In this document: positions 15,263-63,037 of the stretch, piece after piece
How positions within the stretch are numbered: the stretch's first letter is position 1
Layout: every line of letters begins with the position of its first letter
Source of the DNA: Carpediemonas membranifera BICM
Lineage: Eukaryota > Protista > Fornicata
DNA: 64,000 nucleotides
Assembly: GCA_019828565.1 (NCBI GenBank)
Contig: JAHDYR010000012.1
Location: 1 to 64,000 of the forward strand
Reading direction: 5' to 3'
Notes under the pieces: generated by a model
Databases searched by the model: none
The model's input: only the letters and a program-made list of their open reading frames with translations
What the model was told of the DNA's origin: nothing
Translations under genes and position numbers: made by a program

Positions 15263-15717
15263 ATTCTAAAGAGACGGAGCTTGTTGACTTCTTGAGTAGG
15301 TCTGAGAGCGCGTCCTAGGCGCTTGATGATCTTGAGGTCCTTCTGGGCTCTGGAGCGAGCGGCACGATGATGTTGATTAAGGAGGAGAGGGATCTCTTCC
15401 TCCGCGTCGTCAAGATCGTCCGCTGGTAGGATTGCTGTCACCATCTCCCGAACCTCGCTGTCGATTAGCTTCTCAATGTCTCGCTTGCCCCCTAAGGCGC
15501 GGTAATCGTTGAACTTGTCCACAAAGATGAACAGTTCGTTCAGATCTGGCGACTTCAGCAACGGGGGATCGGATTTCTTCAGCATTTGAGGGGAATTAAC
15601 GTTAATGTGCCTCGCTAATGCGGAGAATGCTTTTATAGGGAAAGAAGAAGAGAAAACCCTTGTGCCAATAAATGGCTTAAACTGTATAAATGATTAGTGT
15701 GGTCTATGACCACCACA
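15263..15717 (-). mobile_element. Element A, 5' part: gag N-terminus (15263-15585) and 5' LTR (about 15606-15717)
   Basis: PPLLK...DYRALGG...KRLGRALRP matches gag 29596-30618; TGT...ACA-bounded 112-bp segment; outer LTR end inferred because the partner LTR is outside the window. Confidence 0.85.
15595..15606. promoter_or_regulatory. Palindrome at the PBS position of element A (ATTAACGTTAAT)
   Basis: Perfect 12-bp palindrome between the LTR end and the gag ATG. Confidence 0.8.
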
Positions 15718-16649
15718 TGGCCGCTGTGGTCCATGCACGCTGCTGAATCTGCTGGAGGTGCTGTTAGTATTTGTATGTTGCTGTTTGCTTTGGTCTCTGC
15801 ATACCTTTGAGGCATATCTGCATTTGGTCTCAGGATGTTCGTCGATGCACTGTCTCTGAAAGCTTCCCGGATGGTCTATGTTGGTCATATGGTTGCTTAC
15901 TATAAATATGTTCGTTATCTGCGGTCACTGTTTGTTTCTCTGTAATTCTCTGATACTTTTGCTGCGATTCTTCGTTGCCATTTTCGCCTGCATGAAAAAA
16001 AGTTGGCTAATGTATCGTCCTGAAAATCGGTCAGCGTGGCCTTGTGCGGCTCCTGCAACTGTGTAGGGGTCTCAGTTTTCTTCTTTTTCTCTGGTTCGGC
16101 CGTAAACTGCGTTACGGCGAAATGGCGCACTGTCCAAAAATGCACGCTGATTTTCTCGCTGGGTGGTCTCGGGATTTTTAGGACTGACTTCACTCCAGGT
16201 AGTGCCTACATGAGGGCTATCTTTGGTCTCTGTGCCTCTGCTTGATCACTCCTCCTTCACCGCGAACATGCCAAAAACCAAAAGTGGTCGCGGCTTCTCG
16301 GTGTTCTCTGTGGGTTTCCCTGCTTTCTCTGTTAAATCTCTGTTCATTATCCTCTTATAGTGTCTCTGTGTTGGGCGTGGAGCTCCCACTCGCGCCCGGC
16401 GGAGATCCATGAATGCACCTTTGAGTTTGGCGGACAGGAAGCTGAGGCCGCTCCTAGCAAAAGTCCACAAACACCACGAGAAGCAACCAGCGGAAGATGA
16501 TCCTCAAGCATATCGAGGAGGGTCACCTCGTCTTCGTTATCAAGATGGCTGCTCTCCGGTCTTACTACAGATCGCACGCAGATCGCAAGAAAGATAACTA
16601 CTGGGAAGCCGCCTGGAATATTGAGTATGAGTAAAAGTCACATGATGAT

Positions 16650-16934
16650 TTAATCGGGTTCTGGGGTTTGCTTAGCAGACTGGATCATGCAGAACATCAT
16701 GATCGTCTCGTAGATCTTGCAACGAATGGCATCGCGCCGCTCCGCCTCCACACGCTTTTTATCGCCCGGATCCTCGAGAGAGTTGATGAAGGATTGGACA
16801 AGGTCCAATGCAGCCATAGAGATCTTGCGCTGCTTCTTCGACACGTTCAACTGCTTCTGGTTGCGAGCACCAAGCTTCCTTCTCTGCGCGTTAGGCCTTT
16901 TCGGCACTCTTGCCTTCGGATTACTCCTTGCCAT
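16650..16934 (-). CDS. Small basic hypothetical protein (94 aa)
   Basis: ATG ORF immediately downstream of the kinase; K/R-rich N-terminus. Confidence 0.35.
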   Translation of the reverse strand: MARSNPKARVPKRPNAQRRKLGARNQKQLNVSKKQRKISMAALDLVQSFINSLEDPGDKKRVEAERRDAIRCKIYETIMMFCMIQSAKQTPEPD

Positions 16935-16944
16935 GATTGTTTCC

Positions 16945-18219
16945 TTAAAATGCGCGTGAAATCTCAGTGAAATTTTGCACTTTAGGGAAACAACTGCGAA
17001 ACATCAGGGCAAAGTGATGATGAAGAACAAGTAACCCCCGTTGGCAGCAGTCGACCATTCTCTTTCGCTGATCTACAGAGAGTAAGACCTGTTCAGTATC
17101 ATCCAAGAGGAGCGGACTGGTCTTGGCGACGCATTCATGCACGCGCATGATGACCTTGAGCTTTTCAAGACATTCGGCAGTAGTGGGACGCTTCGTTGGG
17201 TCGAAGTGGAGCATCTGCATTGCCAGGTCGTACATTCCGAGGCAAGTGGGTGGCGTTGTGCCGCGAATCGGTAGTGCAGAGTTCACGTTCACGAATTTGA
17301 GACAATCTCTGAGCGGTTCGAGTGTCTTACGTGACAACTGCAACTGCCCACCATAGAAGTGGCACCAGTTCAGCAAGCTACCAAGCTTCAGCATCTTCTT
17401 CTTCTTCTTGTTGTCGATCTGCGCCATGTTTGCACCCATTTCAGTCACCTTCGCGGCAAAGGGGGACTTGGGGAGACCGTAAAAGAGCATCAAAATGACT
17501 ACACCGCACGAGTAAATGTCGGAGGCAGGTGTGACGACATAAGAACAGGCGGGAAGAGCCGATGCAGTCATTCACGTGAGCTTGGAGGTCTCGTATGGCG
17601 CTCGTTGAACTTCCGGAATGACCGAACGCGTAGCGAGACACTCTTTGAACATCTCTGGGGGAAAATACCCATGCGTGCCGCGATATTCGGATGCCGATTT
17701 CAGTTGTATGGCCCAGTTCTCGTCGCTACAAGCCGGCTTCGTCATAACAGAACCAAAGTCAATGAGGTATCCCTTCTGGTCTGTGCTGAAAAGAAAGTTG
17801 TCGGGCTTAATATCGCAATGAACAACTCCGTGGTCATGCATGAAGCATACAGACTGCAGTAGATGCGAAACGAAGCGGAACTGGAGGCTGGGCTCGGCCT
17901 TACAGATGTCGACGAAGGAGATTTGGTCGACATGAGGAGTCATGAAGGCTGGGACATGGTCTACAAAGCCTGTATCGACGACGGGGAGGACATGCGGACT
18001 TTTCTTGAGCGCTAGCAGGGTGGGGACTTCCATATCGTAGTGCTCATCAATCTTGATCACGACCTTCAGCTTGTCAGCTCCAAAAGGTAATGGTCCTGCC
18101 ATGCGGCGAGGAAGGAAGCTAAGCGGAGACCGGCAGCAATGCCGACAAGCATCGTGAGGCCCCGACTGTGAAAGGGAATGGTATGCCCTAGGCCGGGAAC
18201 TAAGGGAATACAGGCACAA
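16945..18219 (-). pseudogene. Ser/Thr protein kinase (non-RD, loosely Cdc7-like) with an in-frame TGA at 17572-17574
   Basis: VVIK, VHCDIKPDNFLF, LIDFGS, GTHGYFPPE, DIYSCGV, FDPTKRPT; the two ORFs abut in one frame; true start uncertain. Confidence 0.88.
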
Positions 18220-18489
18220 GCCTGCCCAAAAGGAAACGACTGCTCGGTTAGAGGCCTCAGCAACCCACCAAAAGGTACGCCCAAAAGGGAATGTCTACAA
18301 AGAGCAGATTAGTGCGCGCAGGGTAACTCCCGCAGTTTATGTCAGAACAACCTGAATGAGAATAATATCGCTAAACAGCGAAGGGCACCTAGCGGGCGCA
18401 AACGATTACAGCGGATCCATAGCCTTATCCATCCACAAGAGGATAAGGACTGATGCGATCCTCCAGGAAACCAAGCGGTACGGTAACAC

Positions 18490-19265
18490 TGTGCCCTTAA
18501 CCTGCGGAATTCATAAACAGTCTTTATCATATTTCTGGGCCCTAGCACGGCACAGTATCGATACTGCCGATTCAAATGAAGACTCTTACAATTGACACCC
18601 CGTTCGCCGTCGAGAGAGCGCTCCAGGAGTACCTCTCGGCGATGCCCCACGAGAAGAATCCAATTTCGTTCATTAGGGCATTGTCCCCCGAGACAACAGA
18701 AAAACTTCGCGCCCAGTGGCGCCCAACCACTCTTTTTGACACTTTCGAGGACCTGCAACGAACCGTTCTGTCCGATTCCGATGCTCGCCGCGCGGCGAAC
18801 ACAAGCTCTGCCAGTACTGCGGCGCGAGCCCGTACAACGAAGACCGACAACCTCACCGCCATCTGGGTAGAGGAGGTACAGAAGACCATAAGAAAAGCCA
18901 CGTTCGCCGCCTGTAGCGAGTGTGCAGCTAAGCACAAGGACCCCACCCTGACAGCAATGACCCGGGAGTGCCTTGAAGCTCAACATCCCCAGATACTGAC
19001 TGACTGCGGCAAGAAGGCCCGCGACTTCTTCACCCAGCTGACCGACGACCACGACATCGCAAACGTCGAGACAGTCGCACGGCCTGGCAACCTGACCGGC
19101 CCGGACGGCGAAGACGTCTCGGTGGCGTTCGTGTACATGCCCCCAGTGCCCGAGGAGACCAAGCCCGCCCCCTCTTCGGCGGCTTGGCCAGTCTTCGATG
19201 TCGGAGACGTCTACGCTTTCCTCGCCAAGGAGGCGACCTCCATCGCCCCCTACCTCGCATATACC
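18490..19265 (+). mobile_element. Gypsy element I, 5' fragment: LTR ending at 18554 and gag from 18576, truncated
   Basis: gag RPTTLFDTFEDL resembles element G gag IPTTRFPTFEDF; LTR start uncertain (18340 or 18490). Confidence 0.65.
18553..18566. promoter_or_regulatory. Palindrome at the PBS position of element I (CAGTATCGATACTG)
   Basis: Perfect 14-bp palindrome overlapping the terminal CA of ...GGCACA, 10 nt before the gag ATG. Confidence 0.75.
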
Positions 19266-19622
19266 CTCTTGACTAGTAGCATCCGTGATATTCTTGTCGA
19301 GTTGTCTCTCGACGGCATCGATAGAAGCTTCGTCGAGGAACACACGGTAGTTTGCGGCTGGGAAGAATACTCGCAGGCGATCGACGTCCTGGCGGTAAGT
19401 CTTCACGGCGGAGCGGGTGAGCTCCGTGAGCTTGGGGAAATTGCTTTGCGTGATGTTGGCGAACATGGACTAGTTAATTAACTGTGCCGGGCCTTTGGGG
19501 CGGTGCTAGCAAAAAGTGAGGTGAAAGTATTTAAGATACGATACGGCCCTGCCGCGGGCCGGGGGAGACCAAATCGGATCGGCTAAATATATCATGATGT
19601 GTTAACATCATGATATGTAACA
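19266..19622 (-). mobile_element. Gypsy element B, 5' fragment: LTR about 19483-19622 and about 67 codons of gag from 19466
   Basis: FPKLTELT...VFFPAANYRVFLD resembles element C gag PKLALQELS...IFYPAATYAAFLD; palindrome AGTTAATTAACT at 19472-19483. Confidence 0.75.
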
Positions 19623-19899: not shown

Positions 19900-22800
19900 T
19901 GTTCGTTTCGCAGACGAAACGGGGGGTGAAGCTTTACAAGCAAAACGAAAAGACGATTCGGGACCCTGCCCGGGGATCGGATCGGATCATCAATCAAATA
20001 AATATTTGATTGAAGTGCCGCGCTGACACTTCCCTCCCAGTGGTAACGACCACGAGTAACGGGCGCGGCGGCGAGGACTGGTCTATGATATTTCATCCAA
20101 AACCCATCAAATGCGATGGTTTGATTAGATAGTTGAGCGTGAAGACGAACAACTCCATTGAAGGAGGTTATTGAGCTAAAGAGCTCCTGCCGGTGCTGAA
20201 AATGACCTCCATTGGCCTCAATAGGCCCTCGTTGGCGAGATACGAGAACTTTCACGAAAGCTTCGGATCTTCGACGGGATTCTTCCTCGCAAGCGGTCCA
20301 TTAGTCTCAATTAAGCAACATCAAGCTTCTCAGACAGCAGTTTATAGTTTAGGACGTGCTAAGGTCCCGATCAGATGGGGATCATCATCGCCAGCGGCGA
20401 CGACGAGCCAGCGTCTCGAGGGGTGCCACAGCCGTCGGGTGATCCAGTAGATAGGCGTCCAGGGCTTGCAGGCGGTAGTTCTCCTGGTTTAGCGGGATCT
20501 AGGAGTCCTCCTCGGGCTCATAGCCCTTCCAGCGGACACGGAGACGGCGACCCTTCATGTCGAGGTCCTTGACGGACTCGACCTCAAACTCACGGTCTTG
20601 GCGGGCTACGAGTGCCCGAAGTTCTGCGAGTGACTGGCCTCGGCGGCGGTGGAAAGGCCGGAGGCGCTCTGACGCGACGGTGAACTGGTCGGCGTCGTCG
20701 GTGAGGGACTGAATGATGACCGATCCCTTGACCTTCCCCTCCTGTATGACGCGGAACGGGCCGCGCCACTTCATGGCCAGCTTCATCGGCTTGATGGGGG
20801 CCAGCAGTACGAGGCTCCCGCTGGTATAAGCTCGGTAGGTCGTGGACGCAACACGGCCGAGCTTCTTGGCATGGTCGCGGGAGACAGAGTTCCTGGCTCG
20901 TGTGTAGCGCTCCTCCCGACTCTGAGTATCCTTGTGGAAGCCGTCGTGACCAAAGAGGAGGGTCAACGGGGACTGATGGGTCACGGGGTGTACTCGCGAG
21001 TTGAGTATGAGGGCCACTTGCGGGAGCATGTCGCTCCAAGCGGCTTCGTGTTCATCTACGAGCGTCCTCATGTGACGGGCGATCTCAGCATTCATGCGTT
21101 CGACCTTTCCGTTTGCTTGGGGGTGGTACGGCGTAGAGAAGCGGTGTTCGATCGTGAGGCTTCTTGTGAGCTCTTCGATTAAACTGTTCTTGTACTGCGA
21201 GCCTTGGTCCGTCTGTATGAACTCCGGCACGCCGAACGCGGCGCAGAACTTGTAGATTGCGTCGGCGGCGTCTTTTGCTGACGTAGTGTGCGTCGGGAAT
21301 AGAGAAACGTGTCGAGAGAACGCGTCTACGATCACGACGACGTACTTCTGGCCGTGTTCGTCCTGGGCAAACGGGCCCAGGGTGTCGACCTGGACGGACT
21401 GGAAGGGTATTGTCCGCAGGTCTGGGTGTTGGGGGACCGGCAAGCGCTGGCCTGGGCGGACACGCTGGCACTCGGTGCACGTTGTGAAGAAAAAAAGCTC
21501 GGGCATCCTCCCACATGCCGGGCCACTGGACGCCCGCCTTTCGCAGACGGCGTATCATCTCGGGGGGGCCCACATGACCAACCGCGGTGTTGTGCACCTT
21601 GGTGAGCTCAGCTTGTGGGTCGATCATGACGAAGTCCTCGCCTCTCCCGTTCACGTGCACAGCGTAGACAGTGTCGACGTTGAGGTCGGGGAGGACACGA
21701 GATAGGGCGTCTGCTACCGTGTTAGCCTCGCCAGCGACATGTTCGAGAGTAAACGTGAATTCGTTCATCGTAATGCGCCAGCGAGCGATCTTCGCGTTCT
21801 GAGGGTACCTCTTCCGGATAAATACCAGGTTACGGTGATCGGTGTGGACGTGGAGCTTGGGATGGCACTTCAGGAGCGGCGTCAACTCGGAGGAGGAGAG
21901 GGCGTGTAGGATTCCATATAACTCCTGCCTCATATGTGGACCATGCCTTCTGTGTGGTCGTGAAGCTCTTGGCGAAGAATGCCACTACTTCAGCGTCCGG
22001 CGCGTCGGGTCGGCCTTGGATAAGTACACCGCCTACTCCCCTGCGTTGAGGCGTCGGTGAACAGATGCCACTCCTTCGACAGGTCGGGATAGGCCAGGGT
22101 GACCCGGGAGCGGACCTGCTCTTTAAGGCAGGTGAGGGCATGCTCGTGGCGAGCCTCCCAGGTGATGGTGACCGTCTTGCTGCGGTTCTTGGAGCCTGCC
22201 TTTGCGGGGACGCCAGCCAAGAGCTCCGACAGCGTCGCGAGGTGTTTCTGAGCTTGGGGGAGGTGTCGGGCCACATAGTTGAACTTACCCAGCACCATGC
22301 GCAGCTCCTTCAGGTTGCAAGGGCTACGGAGCTCCGTGAGAGCCTTGATGCGGTCTTCGGTCACTCTGATGCCCTGTTTGTCCATGATAAACCCAACAGA
22401 AGTGATCTCTGAGGCACCGAGCGTGCATTTGGCGGCTCCGAGGCGGAGGCGGGCCTTCCGGAGGAGCTCGAAGACGCAGCCAAGGATCGTCATGAATTCC
22501 TTGGGAGACCTAGCATAGATGAGGACGTCGTCTAGGTATACTTCCACGCCACGGTGGAGCACGGGTGCTAGTACCGTTTGCATGATGCGTTGGAAATAGG
22601 ACGGGGCACGGGTGAGGCCGAAGGGGACCCGGCGGTACTGGAAGTATCCGTCGGGTGTGACAAAGGCTGACAGCGGAAGGTCTTCCTCTCGAAGTGGGGC
22701 CTGGTGATAGCCTTGCTTGAGGTCTAGCGAGGCAAACACCGTGCAGCCTGCGGCTGCGCGAAGGAACTCCCGGATGTTAGGTAGCGGGAAGTTGTCTGGC

Positions 22801-24730
22801 GGCGTCAGGCGGTTGATCTGCGTGTAATCAACGCACAGTCTCATGCGTCCGTCCTTCTTTCCGACCACAACAATGGGGCTGGCCCAAGGGCCTTGGCTCG
22901 GCTCGATGATGCCGGCCTGAAGGAGACGCTCGCATTCAGCATCGACTGCGTCTCTGGCCTGCGGGGCAAGACGGCGCGGTGCAGACTGGACTAGAGGGGC
23001 ATCTTCCGCGATGGGGATGTGCATCGGCGGCACATTGGCGCCCTCTGGGGGAATATCGCTGAAGAGCTCGGCGTATTGATTCACGAGCTCAACTATCTCC
23101 GGGCGGAGGTCGTCGTTCGGGATCTGAATGAGCGATAGCGGGTCCTCGGTGGCTGGAGCGATGGAGAACACAGGTAGCGGGATATCGTCATCCTTGGGGT
23201 TGTCGGGCTGGGCGCTGAGCTTCAGGAATAGCTCGTCCTTACACAGGACTCCCAGGCTCCGTAGCGTGTCGGTCCCAATCAGAACCTTCTGAGATTGTCC
23301 GGGAATGACGGCGGCGATGATCGTGGTGTGGACCGGGCTACCGACTAGGGTGGCAGTGAGGGAGGTCTCGATGAACTCATCCACAGATAGGGTACTGCCG
23401 AAGGCCGGGGTGGCCGTGATGGGCTCTCGGGCGACGAGTTTGGCGCTCTTGGCCTCAAGAAGCATGTGCGCGAGAGGCTCGGTGATACACGTGACGGAAG
23501 CACAGGTATCGATGATGGCGCGCATAGAAATGTCACCGATCGCGGCTTCCACGGTAAGAGGTCCCGTGGACGCGGAGGTATCACCGTCTAAGAGGAAAAC
23601 CTCATGATCTTCGACCTGTTCTCCATTATCGAGGGTGTTCACCACGCGAGGGGCACTTTGGCGAGCGGTGTTGCCTCTGGCGGGGCGAAGGGATCCATTC
23701 TCTCGGTTCCATGCTCTGCGGCCTGCGCGATAATCGGGAGCCCAGAAATTTCCAGGGGATTCGCGTGGCTGGGCGAAGGTCTGGCGTCTCTGGTCGGGAT
23801 TATTCCGCGGCTGATCCTGGCGGCCCGGGTTGGGTCCGGTCAGCGGCTTGGGACGATAGGGGGTTATGAGGCCCTGACGCTGAGGCCCAGTGGGGGCATG
23901 GCCCCGACCCGCGTAGTATCCGAAGCGCTGGGCCTTCTCGCGGGCCTCGTCATCTTCATCCGCGATCTTGAGAGTTAGCTGGATGAGGTCCTGCAGAGAG
24001 GACGGACGTTCTACACGTTGGGCATAGTCAACGGCATCTCTGAAGGCGGCGGGCCTCAAGCCCTGCGCAAAGATGCGCTGATGAGCCCGAGAGGCCGACG
24101 TGGTCTCGCTGGCGGCCGGAACGGTGGTATCGGCCGGGGGCTCTGGTTCGGTGCCGTCAGTGTTCCCGGCGAGGATGGATTCGTCCGCCTCAGGGGTAGC
24201 TGGCGGGGTGGCCATGAACTCCGCAGAGCCCAGGACATCTGTAAACGCACGAGCATAAGCTCGGATAAGGTTGGCGCGCGACACGGCGTGGTTCGCATCC
24301 ACCTGGCACTTCACGGCCTCCAGACGGAGACGGAGGTCTTGAGGGTCTCGGGGCGCCAAGAGCTGGTTAACCCAGCGGATTACGTCGTCGTCGGACTGGG
24401 AGGCCAGCGAAACGTTGTGCTGGACCTCTAGGGCACCTTGGAGTTCAGCGTCTAGGAAGGCAGCGTATGTGGCTGCGGGGTAGAAGATTTTGAACTGGAT
24501 CATCGTTCTCTTGAAGTTGGCCCAGGTCTTTGGGCTCAATTCTTGTAGTGCTAGTTTAGGAACCGGCACAGGAACGTTCTGCATCAAACTAGTATTAATA
24601 CTGTTTGTTTCGCAGACGAAACGGGGGGTGAAGCTTTACAAGCAAAACAAAAAGACGATTCGGGACCCTGCCCGGGGATCGGATCGGATCATCAATCAAA
24701 TAAATATTTGATTGAAGTGCCGCGCTGACA
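19900..24730 (-). mobile_element. Full-length Ty3/Gypsy element C (4.8 kb) with chromodomain integrase
   Basis: 129-bp LTRs at 19900-20028 and 24602-24730 (2 mismatches); GGCC TSD; PPT at 20029-20040; palindrome AGTATTAATACT at 24591-24602. Confidence 0.97.
20440..24587 (-). pseudogene. gag-pol polyprotein of element C (gag-PR-RT-RH in one ORF, then frameshifts; integrase plus chromodomain)
   Basis: IIDTCAS, LDLKQGYHQ, YLDD, FTDAS, TDHRNL, VDTLGP...QTDQGSQY...GKVER, FEVESV...VRWKGY; 3' end approximate. Confidence 0.92.
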
Positions 24731-25565
24731 GGCCGGTGAGGCTCTTCTCCCCCCTTTTGGGGTAGAACCAGGTCAGCGCGTCGAGGATGTCGGGGAAGAT
24801 CGCGTTGAGGTCAGTCTCGTCCATGAGGCGTAAGCTTAGCCAGGTGCTGTGGTTCAATGGGTGTTGAACTTTTTACTGAGGAGAAGACTCGACACAAGGG
24901 TGTCGAGGAGAAACTCCTTGACTATTAAATATAACGTAAATCTGTGTAACTTTGGGTAGGACCCACAACACTGCCCCTCCATGCCTGGTATAGGCATGAC
25001 AGAGAGACTTGACGTCAGCATTTCACCAAAGGCCTGGACGGTGCCACCCGACCGCCAACGGTGACTCATAGGGCTGGCAACCCCATGGCCTGAGTGCTTT
25101 CGCATCTAGCTGAACGAAATCAAAATGATGGTATCATGATCTAACTGCGGTACCGCTATGTGAGCTCTGTTTCAAAAATGGTGAAACGTGACGGAGAGGC
25201 TTACCACTGCCCCTCCACGGCCTTCCTAGGCCGTCTTCACAAACCTTATACGTGTTATATGCCATTCCATGTAATTCGAAGGCCAAGAACGATTGCTCTA
25301 GCAAACACTGCCAATGCTGAGCCCTTATCGCTCATAATCACACAGACGCCGAAAAACGTACTTAGAAGCTCCAATTCGGCTCCGTTGAGGAGTTCTGAGG
25401 CTTCTAATTTTCTGCGTCCAACTGTACTTGAATAACAACATCAAACTGACCGGAAGGAGCACTAGGAAGCTCCTAATGCCTTATTACCGACAATAAATGC
25501 ATGCTTGAAGACTAAGATGACCTTGTTAGTTGTTCCTTCGACCGTTTCCGAGAAAAGTGCAGGAT

Positions 25566-26671: not shown

Positions 26672-26713
26672 ATCGTTTGTTCCTCGAGGATACAGCTTCG
26701 ATGTTGAGAAGTT

Positions 26714-30618: not shown

Positions 30619-31436
30619 ATGTTTTGGTAGTACTAGTACTGTGGTTCAATGGGTGTTGAACTTTTTACTGAGGAGAAGACTCGACACAAGGGTGTCGAGG
30701 AGAAACTCCTTGACTATTAAATATAACGTAAATCTGTGTAACTTTGGGTAGGACCCACAACAGTGCGGAGGTTCCCGTCTGGGACGAACTTCTCACTGGT
30801 CAGGATGCTTCTCTCGGCCTCGACTCCCTTAGCCACGATGTGGACGTGGGTCTTCTGTGGCCCCGAGTCGTCTTCCAGTCTTCTCAGCTCTGTACATACT
30901 GGTTTTCACGAAGGAACGGTTCCCCTTTAAAGTGGAACCGTTCCCCATTTCAGACATTTTTTTCACAACAAGGCTGAGTAGAATCTTCTAAGTGGTATAC
31001 ATGCACTCCCCTACCAGTAAGAAGCATGCATACCAACTTTCAAATTCTAAATCCTGCTAGAAAAAAGTAACATAGGGACAAATATTCCTTGGGAGTTCAG
31101 ACTCAAAAATCGGGCAGGGGGGAGGAAATGGTCCATAAGTACGCCTTATGGGTCGCTTCCTCCCCTCTGCCCTATTTTTATTGACTTCTGATTTGCCAGA
31201 TTTGACACATGTTCGAGGTGAGTCTTAGATTACTCAATATGGCCTCCTGATTCAGTAGATAGACTCCAAAATGTCCAACTCGTACTCAAAACCAATTTAA
31301 ACAGACGTCTGTTGCAAAATCTGCCAAAAACGCACTTTAAAGTCATTTTTGCAACAGACGTCTGTGGAAATGGTCTTTAAGCTCTCTGCTGCCGATTTGA
31401 CACAACTACACAAGACTAACTACAGTAATACGTACA

Positions 31437-46835: not shown

Positions 46836-46915
46836 GATTATTGTCTAAGCTCATGCACAGCCCCAAGCCCCAGGGAGCGCCTGTCTGTTGCGAAGCGAGC
46901 CCTGCCAGTGAATGG

Positions 46916-50578: not shown

Positions 50579-53500
50579 ACAACGAACGCGAACGCGAATA
50601 ACGCGCAGATCACGCTCAAAGTACAGAAACAACATCAGTATTAGTGGTTGAGGCCATTAGCCTCAGCTTGACGGTGTGCAGCATCCGCCTGGCGCATGAA
50701 CGCATGGAACACATGAACTTGCTGCCGCATACAGGCCATCATGACCGCGTCGGCAATCTGCCCAACAGTTTCGGCATCAAGGCCCAAAACGTCGCGCATC
50801 TCATCGGTCCATCCTCTCCCATGCACAGCACCAACACCACCACTCTGGCGAACGACCACGGGAATAACCCGGACGTTCCAGTTGGCGTACTGCTCCTTCT
50901 TGCTCCGCATAGATGCAGACGCGTGATTGCTCACCACTACGTCAAGCACAACGGGTTCGGTATGGCCCGGTCTGGTCAAGAGGAGGTCCGCCCGCGCCTT
51001 GACCCGTTTGGTCCGGTCCACAGTCCACTCGCTGCCCCGTCCGAGCCAATGCTCAACTCTTACGCGCCAGGGGTGCCCGCGCAGCAGTTTGGCGAGCGTG
51101 TCGCGAATTTGGTCGTGCCGCTCCGATCCCAGCCCCTCCCTCAGGAAGGGACAGGTAAGAGAATGCTCGGCTGAGCAGGGGACAGACCGGTGATTAACAC
51201 TACGGGCCAGGCATAGCGGACAGACGTCGTGGCCTGTCTCAAAGGCAGGAAGGCCGACATGGTTGCGAAGCATCGGTGCAGCACCCTCGTCACAGGGGTT
51301 ACGACCCATAGCGGCTGGATCAGCCGCGAGTAGAGACCTGATCACGTTTGGCGAGTCGACTGAAACAGTCAGTTGGCTGGAAATGTTATCCTGCAGGAGG
51401 CGTACCAACTTCTTCTGCGTGCTCTCGAGTGAGAGCTTTCTGACATCGCCATATGATGTCGGCCAATCCTTGGGCGTCGCGGCGAGAGCCGGGATGCATG
51501 GCAGTGCGTCTTGGATGAGAGCCTCGGGCCTTTCGACCTTCAGCTCTATGAGTTGTCGTGCGGCACCCAGATAGGCTGGGGCCCACACAACAGAGGGCAT
51601 GGCCAATCCGAGCCCGCCTTGACTGACCGGCAGACAGAGCCTTGCGGCGAAGTCCTTGTCAGTCTCTGCGCTGGACTGGAGCAGCTTCAGGATGGCGGGG
51701 ACCACCTTCTGCTGTTCGAAGTCCAGTTGCGACTCGAACATGTCACCCCCGCCCGGCGAAACATTGCGGAAGAAGTGCTCCCACTTGGTGAGGGCACACA
51801 GTTTCGTCACTAGGAGGGCAGGGGCGACGGCTTCCGCGCCAATGTCAGAGACCATCGATGCAGCAGCGTCAAGCAGCTCCATAACCTTGCGGTTAGCAGA
51901 GCCTAGCTCCCGCATGATGTGCGTGGCGGAGCCGATTGGAACACCAACCAGCTTGGTATCGCGTCTCCGTGGGACGCCACCAGTTGTGTTGCCGTCAACG
52001 ACATCCTTATGGGCTAGCACGCACTTGGCACGGTTGAGGCGGAGGCCAACCTCGTTGAACTTCTGAGCGGCGAGTTCTGTGAGATTGTTGGCCTCACGGC
52101 CGACCCCAGGCGACTGTAGCGGGCGGGTAGTGGTGGCTACAATGTCATCCTGGTAGGCACGGATGCACCACCCAGGGAAAGCCTCGCGCAAGACGTCCAG
52201 AATGGGCTTAACGCCTAAGCTGAAAAGAATTGGCGAGAGCGGGTCCCCTTGGTGAATGCCTTCAGCCGACCTCATGGTGATGCCGGAGGTAGAGAAAAGT
52301 AAGCCCCGTCGGTACATGGTCGACAGGTATGGGATGAGCGCCGGCATGTAGGCCGCCACCACCTTCATGGCGAAGGCCCTCGACAAGCATCCATAGGCGT
52401 TGGAAAGGTCGAGTGTGAGCACTGTACCGCCACTTCGGTAGACTGCACTCACCTCCTCTCCCAACCTCTCCAAGCCGCACTTCTCACCTACTCCGAACTG
52501 GTCCTTCAGGGCACGATCGACGTCAACCAGCCGCTTACGGACGGACCAGGCGAGTGCCTTTGCCGCCACACGGCGAATAGAGTCGCCGATCGCGACCCCT
52601 CGGACCTTCCCTTCACCTTTCGGCACAGGGACGAGAATGCAATGACTGAACACATCAGTGTAAGCTTCTCCGTTCAGGATGTCCTGAACCAGCGGGAGCA
52701 GAGCCTGGACTAGTTCGCGCCTTGATGTCTTGTAGGCGATCTTCAGGTGAAGGAACGATAGCCCGGAGGGCCCCGGGGCCGCCTCAGACTTGAGTGTGTT
52801 GAGGATGGTCTTCAGAGTCTTAGAGGAAACTTCGACACACTGCAGGGGTTCTCGGGGACGTCTCGCATGGGGACGTCGGGACAAAGCCCGTTGAACCCAA
52901 CCTGGAGGTCCCGCAGTTGAGCGTCGATTTCAGTCGGTGTCAGGTCAGTCTCATTGGCTACCATGGACGTGGCGGCCTTCGAGACAAACCCGTGGCGAAT
53001 CAGGTTCAGCGTCCGACGCCACTTGCTCGCGCTAGCGCGTCGTCCGCCTCGGTCCGACGGCGGTGCGTACAGCGTCTTGGGGTAGTCTACAACCTTAAGA
53101 GCCTCAGCCCGCTTGGCGTCGTCACCTGTCGCGTTGTTCACCTCCCTCAATCGTTCAATAAGGCCTCGTGTGAACTTCTCGCGCCCGCGCTTGGGCGGAG
53201 CGATCTTTCCGAGGAACAAGGCCTGACCCGGGGAAGGAAGACATCGGGTCGATGAGCAGGGGTAGTGGGAGGTGCTGATGGCGGGGTTAGGGGAAACCAA
53301 CCGCCGAAACGTGAGCTGCCGTGTCTGCCTGGACCTCTTCGTCAACAGGCTGCGATGACAGACCCTCGTCGTCCGTCGCGATCTCTACTGCAGAGGGAGG
53401 GACATTTGCAGCGGTCTCTGGACGCATAGCGTTGTCTCGTATCGTGCAGGCGATAATCGCAATGGACTTGGGGGCTGTGTTTGCAGAACGCAACGAAGTT

Positions 53501-54742: not shown

Positions 54743-55383
54743 ACAACGAACGCGAACGCGAATAACGCGCAGATCACGCTCAAAGTACAGAAACAACATC
54801 AGTATTAGTGGTTGAGGCCATTAGCCTCAGCTTGACGGTGTGCAGCATCCGCCTGGCGCATGAACGCATGGAACACATGAACTTGCTGCCGCATACAGGC
54901 CATCATGACCGCGTCGGCAATCTGCCCAACAGTTTCGGCATCAAGGCCCAAAACGTCGCGCATCTCATCGGTCCATCCTCTCCCATGCACAGCACCAACA
55001 CCACCACTCTGGCGAACGACCACGGGAATAACCCGGACGTTCCAGTTGGCGTACTGCTCCTTCTTGCTCCGCATAGATGCAGACGCGTGATTGCTCACCA
55101 CTACGTCAAGCACAACGGGTTCGGTATGGCCCGGTCTGGTCAAGAGGAGGTCCGCCCGCGCCTTGACCCGTTTGGTCCGGTCCACAGTCCACTCGCTGCC
55201 CCGTCCGAGCCAATGCTCAACTCTTACGCGCCAGGGGTGCCCGCGCAGCAGTTTGGCGAGCGTGTCGCGAATTTGGTCGTGCCGCTCCGATCCCAGCCCC
55301 TCCCTCAGGAAGGGACAGGTAAGAGAATGCTCGGCTGAGCGGGGGACAGACCGGTGATTAACACTACGGGCCAGGCATAGCGG
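54743..55383 (-). mobile_element. CRE-like unit 3, 3' fragment
   Basis: Nearly identical to 50579-51219. Confidence 0.92.
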
Positions 55384-56300
55384 CTGACATTGCGTCTAAG
55401 TACTCTTCAACCGTAGCAGCGAGGAAATCGTGCGCGTAGGACCTATCATTTACGTCCTTCTTCCGTGACTTGTGGGATTCCTTCTCGGCTTGCTGCATCT
55501 TCTTGGCTTGGGAGAGAGCGGCGCGCATGGTGTTGGCGATGGAGGACTTATCCTCAAAGGTCTTACAGCGTTCACGTAAGCGATCATTGCGGATGCCCTT
55601 CAGGAATTTGGCTACGAGGCTCGACTGCTTCGGGGGTACAGAGGCGCAGTTTTCGAGTGTCCGCTGGTAGATTAACGTGTAGTAGAGCATGGACTCATAA
55701 ACGTTCTTGCTGGCGGTGTCAAAGGTAATCGAGTCAAATCGGTCGAGCGCGTCCTGACGGTCGAGGGGTCCGAAGATGTCGTTCACCATTGAGATAAATC
55801 TTTTGTTGAAGTCGTTAGGGGTCTCGGGTGTGTGAACGGGTAGATGCTCGGACTCGTCGGAGACCGAACTATCAGTGTCAGACTCGGTGTCGTCATCAGT
55901 GTCAGACTCAGGGGGCGCGAGGAACAGAAGGGGGTCCCTAGGCGCAGCGCGGGGTTGCTGTGTGACCTCACGGGCACGAGTAATAAGGTCTTCGAGGTCC
56001 GGGCATTCGAGGAACATGATCTTCAAAACCGTCGCTGCGACGTAATCGAAGATCAGAGGCTTGGAAGCGGCGTTTCGTGCGTAATGGGCAATGAAGGCTT
56101 CCCGGAATGAATACCATGCCTTAGGCTTCGTACTAGTGAGATAGGGTGCCAGGAAAGCTGATAGTTGTTCTACGTTCATCTAGATAGTAATATTACTGTG
56201 GTGGGCACAGAACAACAACAATCAATGCGAAGTGTTTAAATAGGGTCGAACCCTAGTGGTAAATATGGCCTAAATATATACGGGTCAGGTGACCACTACA
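55384..56300 (-). mobile_element. Gypsy element F, 5' fragment: LTR about 56197-56300 and truncated gag from 56179
   Basis: TGT...ACA-bounded 104-bp segment; palindrome AGTAATATTACT at 56186-56197; gag-like LVAKFLKGIRNDRLRE. Confidence 0.75.
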
Positions 56301-56450: not shown

Positions 56451-56790
56451 GCCAGATTTTGCTGGCCACACAACATATACACTCTTACCCAAGGACCTGC
56501 CGTCCACACAGCTGCTCAATGCTAGCTGACCCAGCGGCTCTTTGCGCGCTGCGGTACCGGGCGTCTCTGTGACTGCTCACCGGTGCGATGGATTTTATGG
56601 GTTGTGGCTTAGTGCTCCAATAGTGTGCGCGCTGTGCGCCGCAATTGCGTGGGATGATTACGCATGGCCTCTCCGATATACGGCCTAAGTGAATTCCCGT
56701 TGGCCCAAGTGCCGAGCTGGAGGAGCGTTTCGACTGGCATGCCGGAGAGGGCGTGTGGTATGGATAGAACAGCTAGCGAAAGAGATTTAA

Positions 56791-59700
56791 TCAATTGATT
56801 GGGACACTACCCCTCTCCTCGAGGTGACGGCGCACGACGGACGTGCGGGCGGCGTCAGAGTTGGGACCCTCCCACGTGGCCTTAGCCTCAGGGAAGCCGA
56901 GCCACTTAATGAGGAGGTCGCCAGTCTCGTCGTCGACCTCTAGGACTTTCTCGACGTAATACTCCTCGTCGTCGGTAGCCGCGATGCGCAACAGTTCGGC
57001 GTCGCTGAGGGGGCCTTGGCAGATGCGGATTAACTGGCTCAGGTGGACCCGGCGGCTCTTGCCGCCAGTGAGCGGCGTGATCTCCGCTGCGTAACCGTCG
57101 GCGGCTGTGATGCGGAATGGGCCGCGGTGGCCGTGTAGCTTCGTGGGGCTCTCGTTCTTACGAAGGACCAGAGTGCCCGGCTCGATCGGGGGCGTCGGCT
57201 CTGCGGTCCTTGTCATTGCCTGCTGGCGGTTGAGGGCCTGGTCGGCGAGGATCTGGAGGTGCTCGGTGAGCGCGTCGATGTAGGAGGCTATGTCGTCCAG
57301 GGGAGTATGAACTCTACCCTCCTCCTTGGGTGCGATCGTGAAGTCGCGAGCGGAGGCATGCTTGCCCATCAAGAGAGCAATGGGTTCTACGCCGGTGACG
57401 GAGTGGACCGTAGTGTTCAGGATGTACTGGACGTATGGGACCACGGAGGCCCAGGCGTCGTAACGGTCAAACATCAGACAGAGCACACGTAAGTGTCGCT
57501 TGACTTCCTGGTTGCGTCTCTCGGCCAGGCCGTTTGACTGAGGGTGGAAAGGGATTGTCCGGTGGTACGTGACCTGCAAGCGATCAAGGAAAGCTTCTAT
57601 CATCCGATTGCGGTACTCGGGGCCGTTGTCCGAAAGGAACTCGCGAGGCACACCGTAGCGTCCGATGATGGACCAAAGTGCCAGCCCGACCGTCGTCGCG
57701 TTGTTGGAAGCTGTGGGGATGAGCTCCGTGAAGCGGGTAAACATGTCGGTTGCCACCAGGATGTATCTGAAACCCTCGGAGTCGACAGGGAAAGGACCCA
57801 TGGTGTCTACAGCGATGGTCTGGAAGGGTCGGTCGCGCAGAGAAGACTGCGTTGTGGTCTTAATGAAAGCGGAGAGGCGTGCCTTAGCGCAGTACACGCA
57901 GGTTGACACGACTGCGTGCACGTCGGAGTGGAGGCCTGGCCAATCGTGCCCAAGCTGGCGGACGTTCCTGATGGTGGCCTGCTCGCCCTCGTGGTATCGG
58001 TGAGCTTCTTGCACGATCTTGCGCTTGGCGTCTTCGTCGAGCTCGGCCTCTGAGACGTTGTTGACCTGCGAGACTGTGGCCTGCGGGTTGTATCGACTGA
58101 GTGCGTCGGCCAGTGTGTTCTGCGCGCCTGCGATGTGTCTGATGACGAACTCGAACTCTTGGATCATAAGCAGCCAGCGGAGGTGCTTACGGTTTTCCTG
58201 GCCAGCCTTGGAGTGCAGGTAGACCAAGTTGCGGTGGTCCGTCCAGATCGTCAGGTCCTGGTGGACTCTAAAGATGGGCGAGAGGTCAGGCCGAGTGAGG
58301 CAGTAGATGATCGCGAACAGCTCCTGGTCGTACGTGCACCAACGCGACTGTGTGTCGTTGAAGACCTTTGAGAAGAATGACACGACGCGCCATGTGTTGT
58401 CCGAGTCAAGCTGCAGTAAGACACCGCCGATGCCTTCGAGAGAGGCGTCGGTCTCGAGGCGCCAGGGCCTGCTCTGGTCCGGATGGGCGAGGACCTCTTC
58501 GTCTGTCACGGCCTGCTTGAGCTGATCAAACAGAGCCTGAAGCGTGTCGTCCCAGTCGTTGAAGGTGTAGGGTGGGACCTTGCTGACCAAGGCCTGGAGC
58601 GGCTTGAGGCGTGTCTGGCAGTCGGGGATATAGTCACTGAGGTATGTGAACATACCGATGATCATGCGTAGGTCCTTGACCGAGTGAGGTGCGGCGAGGT
58701 CCTGCATGGATCTGACACGAGTAGGGCTCATGCGGCGGCCCTTGCCATCGACGATATCGCCGAGGATCTCGATAGACGTCGCCCCGAAGACACACTTGTC
58801 GCCGCGGAGGCGGACGTTGCGTTCCTCTGCGATACAGAGTAGGCGGTCGACGTGGTCTAGAAGCTCCTGAGGTGTCTTGGCTCGACCAAAGATGTCGTCG
58901 ATGTAGTTCTTCGTACCGTCGGCGCGCACAGGGGCAAGGATTGCCTGGATGGCCCGCTGGAACTGTGACGGTAGGTTACGAAGACCAAAGGGTGCAAAGT
59001 TGTACTCTTTGAACCGGCCTGGCAGCGTTATAGCGGTGAGGTACTTGTGGTCTTCGCGTACTGGCATTTGATGAAAACCTGACCGGAGGTCACAAGCGAA
59101 GAAGTACTTGGCACCGATGAAGTCGTTGGTGAAGGTGCGGATATCTGCGAGGGGGAACCTGTCTGGTGTAGTTACCGAGTTAAGCTCGCGGTAGTCGGCG
59201 CAAAGTCGTAACTCGCTTGACTTCTTCACTACGATGACGGCTGCGGATGCCACGTGGCTGTAGGAATCGCGTACGATGCCCTGTCTGTCCATGTCGTCGA
59301 TAATCTCGTGCACTCTTTCGGCGGTGGATGCCGTGAGCGGTCGAGGGGCATGGTTGGGTAGGGGTGCGCCTGGCACGATGTCAATCGTTGCGGCGGCGAT
59401 CTGGGCGCCGTCAGGGTGCAGCTCGCCGAATACCGGTGCGTGCCGGCGGATGACATCAGCCATCTCGGCTTTGAGCGGGAAGTCGCTTGCGATGCGTGTG
59501 CCAAGTGGGCCCGCGTCGTCGCTGACGATGTTGTTGACTGCGTGGAAGTCATCGGTCTGGTCGTCGGGGAGGCCTTCGTCCTCGCCGTCGTGAACTTGCG
59601 GGCGGAGGCGAAGCATGATGCCCTCGTCGGACATGAGGCCTAAGAACCACAATATATCCGAGCCGATGAGGACCTTATCGGCCCTGCCGCTGATGACGTG

Positions 59701-59928
59701 CAGGGGCCAATCGATGATCGTTCGGCGGTCGCCCAAGCGGTCCGCGACCAGCGTTGTCTCGAAGGTGCCGTGTTGCTGGAGACCTTGGTCGTCAGGGCCC
59801 GTCAGCTGGACCATGTCGGGGCCCCTCCTGCCAAACTGGGCGAGTGCGTTGGCGAGGTCCAGCGAGATGGTGGACACTACGGAGCCAGGGTCGACCGTCG
59901 CTGAGATAAGCGTGTCACCTATCGTCAC
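56791..59928 (-). CDS. pol of element G (PR-RT-RH-IN-chromodomain), intact 1045 aa
   Basis: VDPGS, CDLRSGFHQ, YIDD, ETDAS, H...H...CVYC, VDTMGP...SDNGPEY...GLAER, YYVEKV...IKWLGF...TWE. Confidence 0.95.
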   Translation of the reverse strand: MTIGDTLISATVDPGSVVSTISLDLANALAQFGRRGPDMVQLTGPDDQGLQQHGTFETTLVADRLGDRRTIIDWPLHVISGRADKVLIGSDILWFLGLMSDEGIMLRLRPQVHDGEDEGLPDDQTDDFHAVNNIVSDDAGPLGTRIASDFPLKAEMADVIRRHAPVFGELHPDGAQIAAATIDIVPGAPLPNHAPRPLTASTAERVHEIIDDMDRQGIVRDSYSHVASAAVIVVKKSSELRLCADYRELNSVTTPDRFPLADIRTFTNDFIGAKYFFACDLRSGFHQMPVREDHKYLTAITLPGRFKEYNFAPFGLRNLPSQFQRAIQAILAPVRADGTKNYIDDIFGRAKTPQELLDHVDRLLCIAEERNVRLRGDKCVFGATSIEILGDIVDGKGRRMSPTRVRSMQDLAAPHSVKDLRMIIGMFTYLSDYIPDCQTRLKPLQALVSKVPPYTFNDWDDTLQALFDQLKQAVTDEEVLAHPDQSRPWRLETDASLEGIGGVLLQLDSDNTWRVVSFFSKVFNDTQSRWCTYDQELFAIIYCLTRPDLSPIFRVHQDLTIWTDHRNLVYLHSKAGQENRKHLRWLLMIQEFEFVIRHIAGAQNTLADALSRYNPQATVSQVNNVSEAELDEDAKRKIVQEAHRYHEGEQATIRNVRQLGHDWPGLHSDVHAVVSTCVYCAKARLSAFIKTTTQSSLRDRPFQTIAVDTMGPFPVDSEGFRYILVATDMFTRFTELIPTASNNATTVGLALWSIIGRYGVPREFLSDNGPEYRNRMIEAFLDRLQVTYHRTIPFHPQSNGLAERRNQEVKRHLRVLCLMFDRYDAWASVVPYVQYILNTTVHSVTGVEPIALLMGKHASARDFTIAPKEEGRVHTPLDDIASYIDALTEHLQILADQALNRQQAMTRTAEPTPPIEPGTLVLRKNESPTKLHGHRGPFRITAADGYAAEITPLTGGKSRRVHLSQLIRICQGPLSDAELLRIAATDDEEYYVEKVLEVDDETGDLLIKWLGFPEAKATWEGPNSDAARTSVVRRHLEERGSVPIN

Positions 59929-61213
59929 TGGAATCCGGAGAAGCCGGCCCGGCGAGTAAGCGTGCTCGGCATGCTCTACGTTCTGAACGCTGCCTTGTTG
60001 GGGCTTGTTGGGGGGTGTCGGTGTGAATGGTGTGGCCTGCTTGGGGTTCTGCCTGAACTGCCAAGGACCCTTCGACGTCGATGGTTGCTGGGGCTGCTGT
60101 GGTTGTCCAGCGGCCTGTCGTTGGGGACCAACCTGCCTGCGGCTGGCGTGACTGGTTCTGCTGGGCGGCTGAGGCTTGGTGTGGTGTGCGTTGAGAGGCC
60201 TGGCCCTGGCGGGGATCTTGAGGTTGGCGGCCCGCCGGTGTGGCTCTGTTAGCCTGACTCTGGCGCTTCAGCAGCCGGCACTCTTCAGTAGAGTGGCCGC
60301 CGGGACCGTGGACGCGGCAGGTCTTGCGGCCGTTGCCCGGTGTAGCGGGGACCTTGGCGCCTGCCATGGGACCGGAGGTCCTCTGGCAGAAGGACCAAGG
60401 CGTGACGATCGTCCCATCGGAGTTAGTTGGCAAAGCCAGGATGCGGTGCTGGACGTCATCGATGGTGGTGGCGCCGTCGGCGAAATCCTCGAAGGCGAGG
60501 GCGGCTTCGGTGACGTCAAAACCGCGGGTCAGCACGCGGAAAAGCGTGGATATCAGCCTCTTCTCGGTGAGGGGCGTGTAACCGTTTTCTTCTGTCGGGA
60601 ACTTGGGGTTCAGCTGGCGACAGTGCTTGCCGAAAGCTAGGAACATCTTCTGCATAGAGGTGATGTCTCCACCTGTGAGCGTGGTCCTTTCCAGGATCGC
60701 CGCCGCGCGAGCGGCTGGGTTGGCCCGCTGGGCGGGTGTCAGCTCGAAGTACGCGGTGTAGGTGAGCAAGAGGTCCGCCCGCTCGCGGAGCTCCTCCCTC
60801 GAGAGGCGCTCTGAGGCGTTGGTCGAGGTGTCTGGGGCCGTCGGTGGCGGACTGACCGCCTTGAGGGCTGCGGTGATGAAGGCCTGCTTCAGCTCGTCTG
60901 AAGCGATCGAGGCCGCTTGGGTGTCTATATCCTTGAGCTTGGCCAGGAGAGCGCTGAGCTCCTCGGCCGATTTGTCGTCGTCGTTCTTCTCGGGTTCATT
61001 CTGCTCGGAAGGCTTATGAATGGGAGGACGGATCTCTGTCTCAAAGAAGCATTGGAAATCCTCGAATGTTGGGAATCTCGTTGTCGGGATGAACGCCGCG
61101 CGGATTTCGGCTAGTTTCTCGCTCCCGAGGAAAAAGAGGATGCTAGACGGCTGCTTTTTGCTTGCAACGTGAAGACGATACTCGTCTAAACGGCTGTTGC
61201 TGACTAAAACCAT
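59915..61213 (-). CDS. gag of element G
   Basis: ORF directly after the 5' LTR; CRVHGPGGHSTEEC (CHHC knuckle). Confidence 0.88.
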   Translation of the reverse strand: MVLVSNSRLDEYRLHVASKKQPSSILFFLGSEKLAEIRAAFIPTTRFPTFEDFQCFFETEIRPPIHKPSEQNEPEKNDDDKSAEELSALLAKLKDIDTQAASIASDELKQAFITAALKAVSPPPTAPDTSTNASERLSREELRERADLLLTYTAYFELTPAQRANPAARAAAILERTTLTGGDITSMQKMFLAFGKHCRQLNPKFPTEENGYTPLTEKRLISTLFRVLTRGFDVTEAALAFEDFADGATTIDDVQHRILALPTNSDGTIVTPWSFCQRTSGPMAGAKVPATPGNGRKTCRVHGPGGHSTEECRLLKRQSQANRATPAGRQPQDPRQGQASQRTPHQASAAQQNQSRQPQAGWSPTTGRWTTTAAPATIDVEGSLAVQAEPQAGHTIHTDTPQQAPTRQRSERRACRARLLAGPASPDSSDDR

Positions 61214-62553
61214 GACAGTGATCACTGTGGTATGGATAGAACAGCTAGCGAAAGAGATTTAATCAATTGATTGGGACAGGGCGAGCTCCGACGCAGCTCC
61301 CTTGCGGAAACTGTGTAAACCGACGCGGTCGTTGTTGAAGGCGCGTTTCAGCTCGTTTCTCAACGCTCTCATGGTGGCTGGGTGCCTCTTGCTAACTTTT
61401 GTGGAAGCTGTGACGGCCCGCCAGATGCAGGCGTCAGGCGGGAGGGACAGGCCCGCGAGCCACCTCTTAAGAGCAAGGGCGGGATTGAAAGGCCCCAGGA
61501 GAACGTTAGGTAGAGACTTTGTCACTCGTGTCATGGTCTTGGTCCTCCCTAATCTCAGGCGGGCATCACCATTCGCTGCGAACGAGATGTCGGCTGGCGT
61601 GAGGCGGAAGATCTCCGCTCCCCTACTGACTGTGATGTAAGCGAACGCCGCGAACATGGTCGCCTGGTAAGTGGCTATGTCCTTGTTCCTCTCTGCTAGA
61701 GCCCGGATCATGGCCTCCTTGAAGACCGGCGCGGAGCCGCCCGTCATGCCGTCGATGTTGGCGTGTCCTGAGATGCCTCTGCGGATTTGCGAGCAGTACT
61801 GGCCGGCAACCCAGTCAGAGACGAGAGGAGCCAGTTGCTCGATCCAATAGCCCTTCCTCTCGACTGTTGCCGGAGAGAAGTGCTCGGCCTGCTCCTCGAG
61901 GAAGGAGCGGTACTCGTCGGTGTCGTCCTCTTCCGGGTCTCTGGCTGCCAGGAACGCGGTGATGTAGCCCGCTACCGTTCTCTTGGACTCATCTCTTCGC
62001 ATGTGTGCAAGGCTGGGGTGGTTGCGGACGCGCTCGAAAACGTCGGGAAGGCGAGGGCTAGCAGGCGAACTGTGCCGTTCGGGCGCTGCGTGTATTTGAG
62101 AGCAGCCTGGTCCTCGGCGGCGAGCTGACTGTGGTGTACCGAGAAGGTCAACTTGCAGGTTGCTCTGGACTTGAGGAGGCGGAGCTCTGGCGCGACTGTG
62201 TCTGGTACGACGAGGAAAAGTGATGCCGGCCAGGCTCTTGGGGGGAACGTAGTCGGGGTCCCTGGGGTCGACATCAAGCGCTGGCATATCTTCGGGATGA
62301 GGCTCGGGTGTGGGGCAGCGAACATGCGTTTGTCCGTCCAGTCCCTCTCCAGCCCATCGGGCCAACCCTGCTTGGCGAAGCCTGGCAGGGCCAGAGAGCG
62401 GTCTGGGTGTGCAGTCGCATCTGAGTCGACCGGCCCCCACCTCAGCATCATGATCTCCAATATATGGCGTGGTGTGTGGAGGGGCTCTAGCGGCACGCCT
62501 CGTGAGAGCCTGTCGGCCGTAATGTTGAGGTGTCCTGGTGTGTGGCGTGCCTT

Positions 62554-63037
62554 TGTCGCGGGGCTCCAGAATGGTTGTGGCCATTATTGCCACCAAGCAG
62601 GTTTACTCTCTTAAATAGTTCCGACACAAAGTGATCACTTTTCGAAGGAAAGATGGTTAACATCTCTGTTGATGTACCATCACTTGATCCGAAGAAACTT
62701 ACACTACCTGTGCTAAGAGAGTTCAAGCGTAGCGCACGCATTTGGGTTGCTCAGAACGATGACTTCCCTGTTGGCGTCCTACTGCCGGAGTCCCTCCAGA
62801 AAGCTGCCGAGGAGCATTATGACGGTAAGAGCATTGAAGACCTGTCGCTCGATAACATCATCAGTTACCTCCGCAGTGAGGCCATTCCCAAGTCTCTCCC
62901 GGCCCTGAAGGAGGCGATCGATGTAATCGACTGCCCCCTTACGTCGAAGGGACTCAACCGATCAGCCGCAATGCGTGCCTATTGCGCTGACTTCACCGAG
63001 TATGCCGACTTGGTCCTAGAGGTAGCGATGAAAGAAA
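62554..63037 (+). mobile_element. Gypsy element H, 5' fragment: 75-bp LTR 62554-62628 and gag from 62653, truncated
   Basis: LTR ends independently confirmed by the mini solo LTR at 13685-13708; palindrome AAAGTGATCACTTT at 62628-62641; gag resembles element C gag (...MRAYCADFTE versus ...IRAYARAFTD). Confidence 0.85.

Follow-up and report, generated by a model that had tools for sequence, protein, structure and literature searches.

We analysed the first 64 kb (hereafter the window) of contig JAHDYR010000012.1 of Carpediemonas membranifera, whose genome assembly comprises 24.2 Mb in 69 contigs. Retroelements are nested throughout the window, and Pfam matches on three of them (elements C, D and G) follow the order protease (PR), reverse transcriptase (RT), RNase H (RH) and integrase (IN) of Ty3/gypsy long terminal repeat (LTR) retrotransposons, D carrying a chromodomain in addition. 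A first-pass annotation had reported that, at nine junctions between a 5' LTR and gag, a perfect palindrome stands where a transfer RNA (tRNA) primer-binding site (PBS) would be expected. Perfect palindromes were indeed found at all nine sites (A, B, C, D, F and G on the minus strand; E, H and I on the plus strand). They comprise eight distinct sequences, the core following the terminal CA of the LTR is 10 nt long in seven of the nine, and none begins with TGG. Read on the element strand, the layout is CA, palindrome, 1-12 nt and ATG, with the exception of E, which has no nearby ATG.

The three complete elements lie on the minus strand. Element C (4831 bp; 19900-24730), with PR, RT, RH and IN, is bounded by LTRs of 129 bp each (19900-20028 and 24602-24730) and a target-site duplication (TSD) of GGCC; its palindrome, AGTATTAATACT (24591-24602), is offset by -1 from the LTR end, and the ATG lies 17 nt past the LTR. 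Element D (5915 bp; 24848-30762) is a complete chromovirus with a gag zinc knuckle, RH, IN and chromodomain, LTRs of 123 bp each (24848-24970 and 30640-30762) and a 4-bp TSD (GTGC on the plus strand). Its palindrome, AGTACTAGTACT (30629-30640), belongs to a 28-nt junction that is identical in 30 genomic copies. Element G (4525 bp; 56754-61278), of which the genome holds at least eight near-identical copies, has LTRs of only 53 bp each (56754-56806 and 61226-61278) and a TSD of GGGCG; the palindrome ACAGTGATCACTGT (61215-61228) takes in the last 3 nt of the LTR, and the ATG lies 12 nt past it.

The other six junctions belong to incomplete copies. On the plus strand, the 5' LTR of E (32344-32472) is homologous to that of D (93%) and is followed by the same palindrome, AGTACTAGTACT (32472-32483), in a decayed copy. 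The 112-bp 5' LTR of A (15606-15717, minus strand) has its end set by a second copy (L014): the similarity between the two stops exactly at the final A, which opens the palindrome ATTAACGTTAAT (15595-15606), with the core TTAACGTTAA directly behind the CA. The gag N-terminal fragment of A (15262-15585, minus strand) is 35-40% identical to the gag of D and E and is truncated at 15262. B, F, H and I are 5' fragments, and the open reading frames (ORFs) behind their palindromes are real gag N-termini, open in frames of 940-1590 aa elsewhere in the genome. For I (plus strand), the palindrome CAGTATCGATACTG (18553-18566) has the LTR on its left side, with an extent of ~18342-18554 inferred from a high-copy repeat, and precedes residues 1-247 of gag (18576-19316), which are open in the 941-1589-aa frames of other copies. 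For B (minus strand), the palindrome AGTTAATTAACT (19472-19483) has the LTR on its right side and directly precedes the first ~66 residues of gag (19466 down to 19269); a 374-aa minus-strand ORF at 18342-19466 is mostly antisense to I gag, only its first ~66 residues being B. The palindrome of F, AGTAATATTACT (56186-56197, minus strand), adjoins gag at 55364-56179, and full-length copies of F occur elsewhere in the genome; that of H, AAAGTGATCACTTT (62628-62641, plus strand), adjoins a gag N-terminus at 62653-63048. The LTR ends are thus fixed independently for A, C, D, E and G, while B, F, H and I were placed by their gag N-termini.

These elements are compact (4.4-5.9 kb, with LTRs of 50-129 bp) and have a polypurine tract ahead of the 3' LTR, for example GGGAGGGCAG or GAGAGGGGTAG directly before the TG. 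Among the autonomous gypsy elements (G in the window, with LTRs at 56754-56806 and 61226-61278, and loci L001-L020), most LTRs measure 50-88 bp and the longest 129 bp. Many LTR pairs are 100% identical, so these elements appear to have been active recently. Each of the mini-LTRs also contains, ~30-45 nt before its end, an AT-rich and often palindromic motif (CAATTG, TTGATTAAA, or TTTATAAA in the related assembly PPCM01) that is probably an initiator. No short non-autonomous derivatives were found in the sequences examined.

Palindromes of at least 10 nt are frequent in the window (83 observed versus 63 +/- 8 expected from Markov simulations); therefore, LTR ends were defined blind to palindromes, as short direct repeats 3.5-8 kb apart with TG..CA ends and a target duplication of 4-5 bp. 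This search returned 16 elements of 11 families from the window and 20 other loci of the same genome. All 16 have a perfect palindrome of 10-14 nt starting between -3 and +1 from the first base past the 5' LTR, while none of the 16 has a palindrome of at least 10 nt after the 3' LTR. With a chance of ~0.006 per junction (about 6 x 4^-5), it is the position of the palindrome that is non-random. The palindrome and the LTR share 1-3 nt, and in 11 of 18 defined junctions the offset is -1, the final A of the LTR being counted in. The ATG, where present, lies 0-22 nt past the LTR. The first-pass annotation had noted that the palindrome is missing beside 3' LTRs and that gag starts close by; both points were borne out. 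Its wording that every LTR retrotransposon has the palindrome holds for the Ty3/gypsy elements only, as a probable tyrosine-recombinase (DIRS-like) retroelement in the window is without such a junction.

The palindromes vary a great deal in sequence and not at all in symmetry. We counted 33 distinct palindromes in total, 10-16 nt long and with 20 distinct inner 8-mers, and found the same arms reused around centres that measure 0, 2 or 4 nt and are always symmetric (GTGA/TCAC, GTGA-AT-TCAC and GTGA-TTAA-TCAC). Differences between families are symmetric, and four sister pairs in a tree of RT-RH-IN sequences carry different palindromes in which both arms have changed, consistent with the compensatory change that had been proposed from the window alone. 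Conversely, D and E share one palindrome though their gag proteins are only 65-71% identical, and some of the copies that share the D junction have gag only 78-82% identical. Taken together, such symmetric variation and conservation are, as judged from the sequences, the mark of selection that keeps one half able to pair with the other.

We searched for a partner with which the site could pair. A TGG site is absent after the LTR in the palindrome-bearing elements. The LTR and the 90 nt downstream were searched for complements, and in 12 of 13 families the longest one did not exceed what shuffled sequence gives; the exception, family L006, has a 7-nt complement in the LTR (p ~0.02), which is not significant over 13 tests. 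The missing LTR complement means that these elements are not of the Tf1 type, and the missing downstream complement that they are not of the type of the GalEa elements with their CHSeq2 (see below). No second copy of the palindrome was found anywhere in an element. As it occurs exactly once, its sole partner would be the same site on another molecule. The annotation had named host small RNAs complementary to these sites as the observation that would count against it: in a sample confined to tRNAs, the 16 distinct sequences from this genome reach at most 7 nt of complementarity, and at most 2 nt where the match is 3'-anchored. Predicted self-duplexes range from -11 to -22 kcal/mol, values that are illustrative only, and are similar in length to the 11-nt primer duplex of Tf1.

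The nearest proteins outside this genome are encoded in assembly GCA_002919055.1 (PPCM01), with 36-61% identity in RT-IN. About 24 PPCM01 contigs have an intact 5' end, and all of them show CA and a palindrome before the ATG, in 17 different sequences; two of these elements have TSD-defined LTRs. Two environmental contigs, L026 (ENA) and L065 (JGI), also have a palindrome at the junction. More distant relatives served as positive controls. In L028 and L029, whose LTRs have TG..CA ends and are flanked by TSDs, a TGG site lies 1-2 nt beyond the CA; 14 WLWD01 loci, with LTRs of ~240-420 bp and nine of them with TSDs, have the TGG site 1-3 nt (mostly 2) after the CA. Thus, the pipeline detects normal tRNA sites where they exist. 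In the RT-RH-IN tree, 14 palindrome-bearing elements stand apart from eight outgroups with a support of 92/95, and D and L026 are on long branches; this support points to a restriction of the palindrome to one clade but is not decisive.

Two further features of these relatives were observed. The LTR end and palindrome of the I family (CACGGCACAGTATCGATACT, window 18540-18566) are nearly identical in L041 (PPCM01002138.1), which suggests either a very conserved unique 5' region (U5) and PBS or a recent exchange between two organisms. In the ENA metagenome scaffold L026, the chromovirus relative of the palindrome type recurs in the assembly with a period of 4749 bp, and may represent a tandem array or a circular form.

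Phrase searches of the literature found no published description of a palindromic PBS, and none of Carpediemonas elements was found. The annotation's remark that it knew of no such description must be qualified, since a post-LTR palindrome has been published for GalEa, fungal elements of the Ty1/copia group. Their Conserved Hairpin Site begins with a 9-bp post-LTR sequence, CHSeq1, that is palindromic with the final A of the LTR, occurs as two versions in 85% of families, and forms a hairpin with its complement, CHSeq2, which lies 12-41 nt further downstream (Donnart et al. 2017, PMC5445492). In both cases a tRNA PBS is absent, the nucleotides right behind the 5' LTR form a palindrome together with its final A, and palindromy outlasts sequence variation. 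However, GalEa belongs to the copia superfamily, with IN before RT, whereas the elements described here have the gypsy/chromoviral RT-RH-IN order; CHSeq1 is nearly invariant, as opposed to 33 versions here; and the downstream CHSeq2 has no counterpart. The Copia RT profile PF07727 gave no match in this genome, although a control likewise gave none.

Other known systems share parts of this arrangement. In Tf1/sushi self-priming (Levin 1995), the PBS is no palindrome; its complement is the very start of the transcript, which lies within the LTR (PMC5006619, PMC5445492). Tf1 is likewise a tRNA-independent Ty3/gypsy element with a short (~11 nt) primer duplex formed from its own RNA, but it has the LTR complement that is missing here, so that any pairing in the present elements must join two molecules. 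The human immunodeficiency virus (HIV) dimer initiation site (DIS), Ty1 PAL and the PBS-pal of mouse mammary tumour virus (MMTV) are also self-complementary 5' leader sequences able to join two genomic RNAs; they are 6-nt palindromes that accompany a separate tRNA PBS and usually sit in hairpin loops (PMC8096270, PMC6844567), whereas those described here span 10-16 nt and occupy the place of the PBS. Finally, two chromoviruses lack a tRNA PBS: Dictyostelium Skipper has a polypyrimidine tract after the LTR (PMC5006619) and SM-Tcn1 a T-rich post-LTR sequence (PMC2864245). These are chromodomain-bearing gypsy elements that, like those of Carpediemonas, lost the TGG site and whose priming is unexplained, though with pyrimidine tracts in place of palindromes. 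A TGG-type PBS is therefore usual for Ty3/gypsy elements and not required, Tf1 and Skipper also being without one.

The above findings suggest that the lineage of these elements exchanged its tRNA PBS for a perfect palindrome of 10-16 nt abutting U5. We propose that the palindromes of two genomic RNAs pair with each other and that a cut at this site provides the primer, a reading to which the sequences lead us to give about an even chance of being right. Pairing of the palindrome in one genomic RNA with its counterpart in another, or in a short 5' piece of another, would yield an RNA duplex of 10-14 bp. If an endonuclease then cut this duplex at its 3' edge or close to it, much as RNase H does in Tf1 self-priming, a 3'-OH would come to lie beside the partner's U5, and RT could extend it through U5-R to give minus-strand strong-stop DNA. 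One site would thus serve dimerisation and priming alike. Trans self-pairing is the most likely arrangement because nothing else in the element or in the sampled tRNAs is complementary to the site. That a self-complementary PBS would let two RNAs anneal had been put forward in the first-pass annotation; the PBS position, the symmetric variation and the lack of any other partner argue well for self-pairing, which is read from covariation, while the cut and priming from it are suggested by analogy with Tf1.

Several points weigh against this proposal. Pairing, cleavage and priming are all deduced from sequence. The survey of host small RNAs covered 21 of at least 63 tRNA genes. MMTV palindromes inside the PBS are dispensable for dimerisation (PMC8096270); a palindromic PBS alone is no proof of a dimer function. 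The earlier suggestion of a primer ending exactly at U5 is uncertain: integrases of the TGG-type relatives leave a spacer of 1-3 nt, mostly 2, between the CA and the PBS. The palindrome shares 1-3 nt with the LTR; should integrase here trim 2 nt, as in those relatives, priming would start inside the palindrome, and the simple picture of a cut at its 3' edge might not hold in every detail. Lastly, a genome search for snap-back copies (U5, palindrome, inverted U5) of families D and G gave 0 matches at up to 3 mismatches, as compared with 30 matches to the normal D junction pattern in the same search; this absence carries little weight, since by-products of this kind may never integrate.

The strongest alternative, though an unlikely one in our view, is that the palindrome is only a signal for dimerisation or packaging, like a retroviral DIS beside U5, or for a switch in translation, and that the primer is something else. 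Dimer initiation sites are characterised by perfect self-complementarity, and the predicted homodimers pair through the palindrome in 12 of 13 leaders, in cofolds that pair palindromes by construction. The gag ATG is only 1-10 nt away, so pairing could also gate translation. Yet the 0-22 nt between LTR and gag ATG hold no other PBS candidate, and neither a TGG site nor a complement in tRNAs, in the LTR or downstream offers a different primer. A DIS is normally extra to the PBS and presented in a hairpin loop (PMC5445492), and it has no need to be anchored within 5 nt of the LTR end, as this site is.

A role at the level of DNA or protein is less probable again. Here a dimeric protein (integrase, Gag or a host factor) would bind the palindrome, or the palindrome would fold into a hairpin while a DNA intermediate is single-stranded, or it would be the AT-centred initiator of a gag mRNA with a short leader. 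Dimeric proteins typically bind palindromic DNA, most of the centres are AT-rich or resemble 4-nt restriction sites, the ATG is very near, and the LTRs also hold promoter-like AT-rich palindromes such as TTTATAAA. Nevertheless, 20 inner 8-mers with strict symmetry suit base pairing far better than recognition by a protein, which is unlikely because each family would need a new specificity, and changes in length preserve symmetry as well. A 10-nt palindrome without a loop is a poor hairpin, and a transcript starting in the palindrome would be without R-U5 and could not be the genome.

Self-priming in cis, by a Tf1-like fold-back of the transcript 5' end or a GalEa-like Conserved Hairpin Site, would follow one of two published tRNA-independent layouts (PMC5006619, PMC5445492), and GalEa CHSeq1 is palindromic with the same final A. 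We consider it very improbable, given that for 12 of 13 families the complements in the LTR or the 90 nt downstream are no longer than those that shuffled sequence gives and that the element has no second palindrome copy. Least credible of all is priming of each family by host small RNAs (tRNA fragments, small nuclear RNAs or similar): Copia and Ty5 prime on internal tRNA regions and our check covered part of the tRNA set, but 33 different sites would require as many host RNAs, a host primer leaves perfect symmetry unexplained, no site starts with TGG, and the best tRNA complements are short and not 3'-anchored.

A tenth candidate junction, at 31354-31365, was rejected, as the ORF behind it resembles a protein kinase and not gag; a palindrome followed by an ATG can thus occur without an LTR. 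This stretch (31295-31371) contains two related palindromes, AACAGACGTCTGTT and ACAGACGTCTGT, 40 nt apart and just ahead of the ATG; they do not mark an LTR junction and may be a promoter element. The ORF behind them resembles a kinase fragment at 17563-18021, and a protein-kinase gene fragment (Pfam Pkinase) lies at 16945-18219 on the minus strand, between A and I.

The window holds other repeats and mobile-element genes. An ORF for a eukaryote-type tyrosine recombinase (61259-62596, minus strand; a weak Phage_integrase match, with a very high atlas score) extends into the LTR of G, and an RT without integrase (50641-52884, minus strand) lies in a region flanked by 641-bp direct repeats (50579-51219 and 54743-55383). 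The recombinase ORF and the integrase-less RT are probably parts of one DIRS-like element broken by the insertions of F and G, as judged from their sequences. A 16-nt palindrome, GTTGCATCGATGCAAC, occurs in five copies (7692, 12733, 38037, 43738 and 47172) and a 14-nt palindrome, ATACACGCGTGTAT, in three (37952, 43653 and 47087); they belong to a repeat family with 1.2-kb direct repeats (37124-38328 and 42825-44030) and 414-bp repeats (7416-7829 and 12457-12870), whose ORFs gave no Pfam match. A G-rich satellite with a ~14-bp period fills ~1.9 kb at 4400-6300, with a short copy at 13109-13270, and an array of 12-13-bp units of the CCCGGGCTCTCT type is found at 6581-6910.

To our knowledge, a host tRNA is almost always thought to be needed for priming in LTR retroelements, Tf1-type self-priming being the sole proven exception. 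We suggest, tentatively and with rather more doubt than confidence, that dimer-templated priming may be a third means of starting reverse transcription in LTR retroelements, in which case the GalEa palindrome would be a convergent or very old use of it. The PBS of one packaged RNA, after being cut, would prime synthesis from the same PBS on the other, and this would couple dimerisation, packaging of two genomes and initiation in one site of 10-16 nt. The elements are tractable, with sizes of 4.4-4.9 kb, LTRs of 50-90 bp and many identical, intact copies. A clade with dozens of seemingly recently active families keeps a self-complementary site under what appears to be strong and visibly compensatory selection. 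If these elements do prime on a sister RNA, this would amount to a simple, sequence-programmable primer system for reverse transcriptases; it would also explain the packaging of two genomes, and would free the element of host tRNAs and of silencing based on tRNA fragments.

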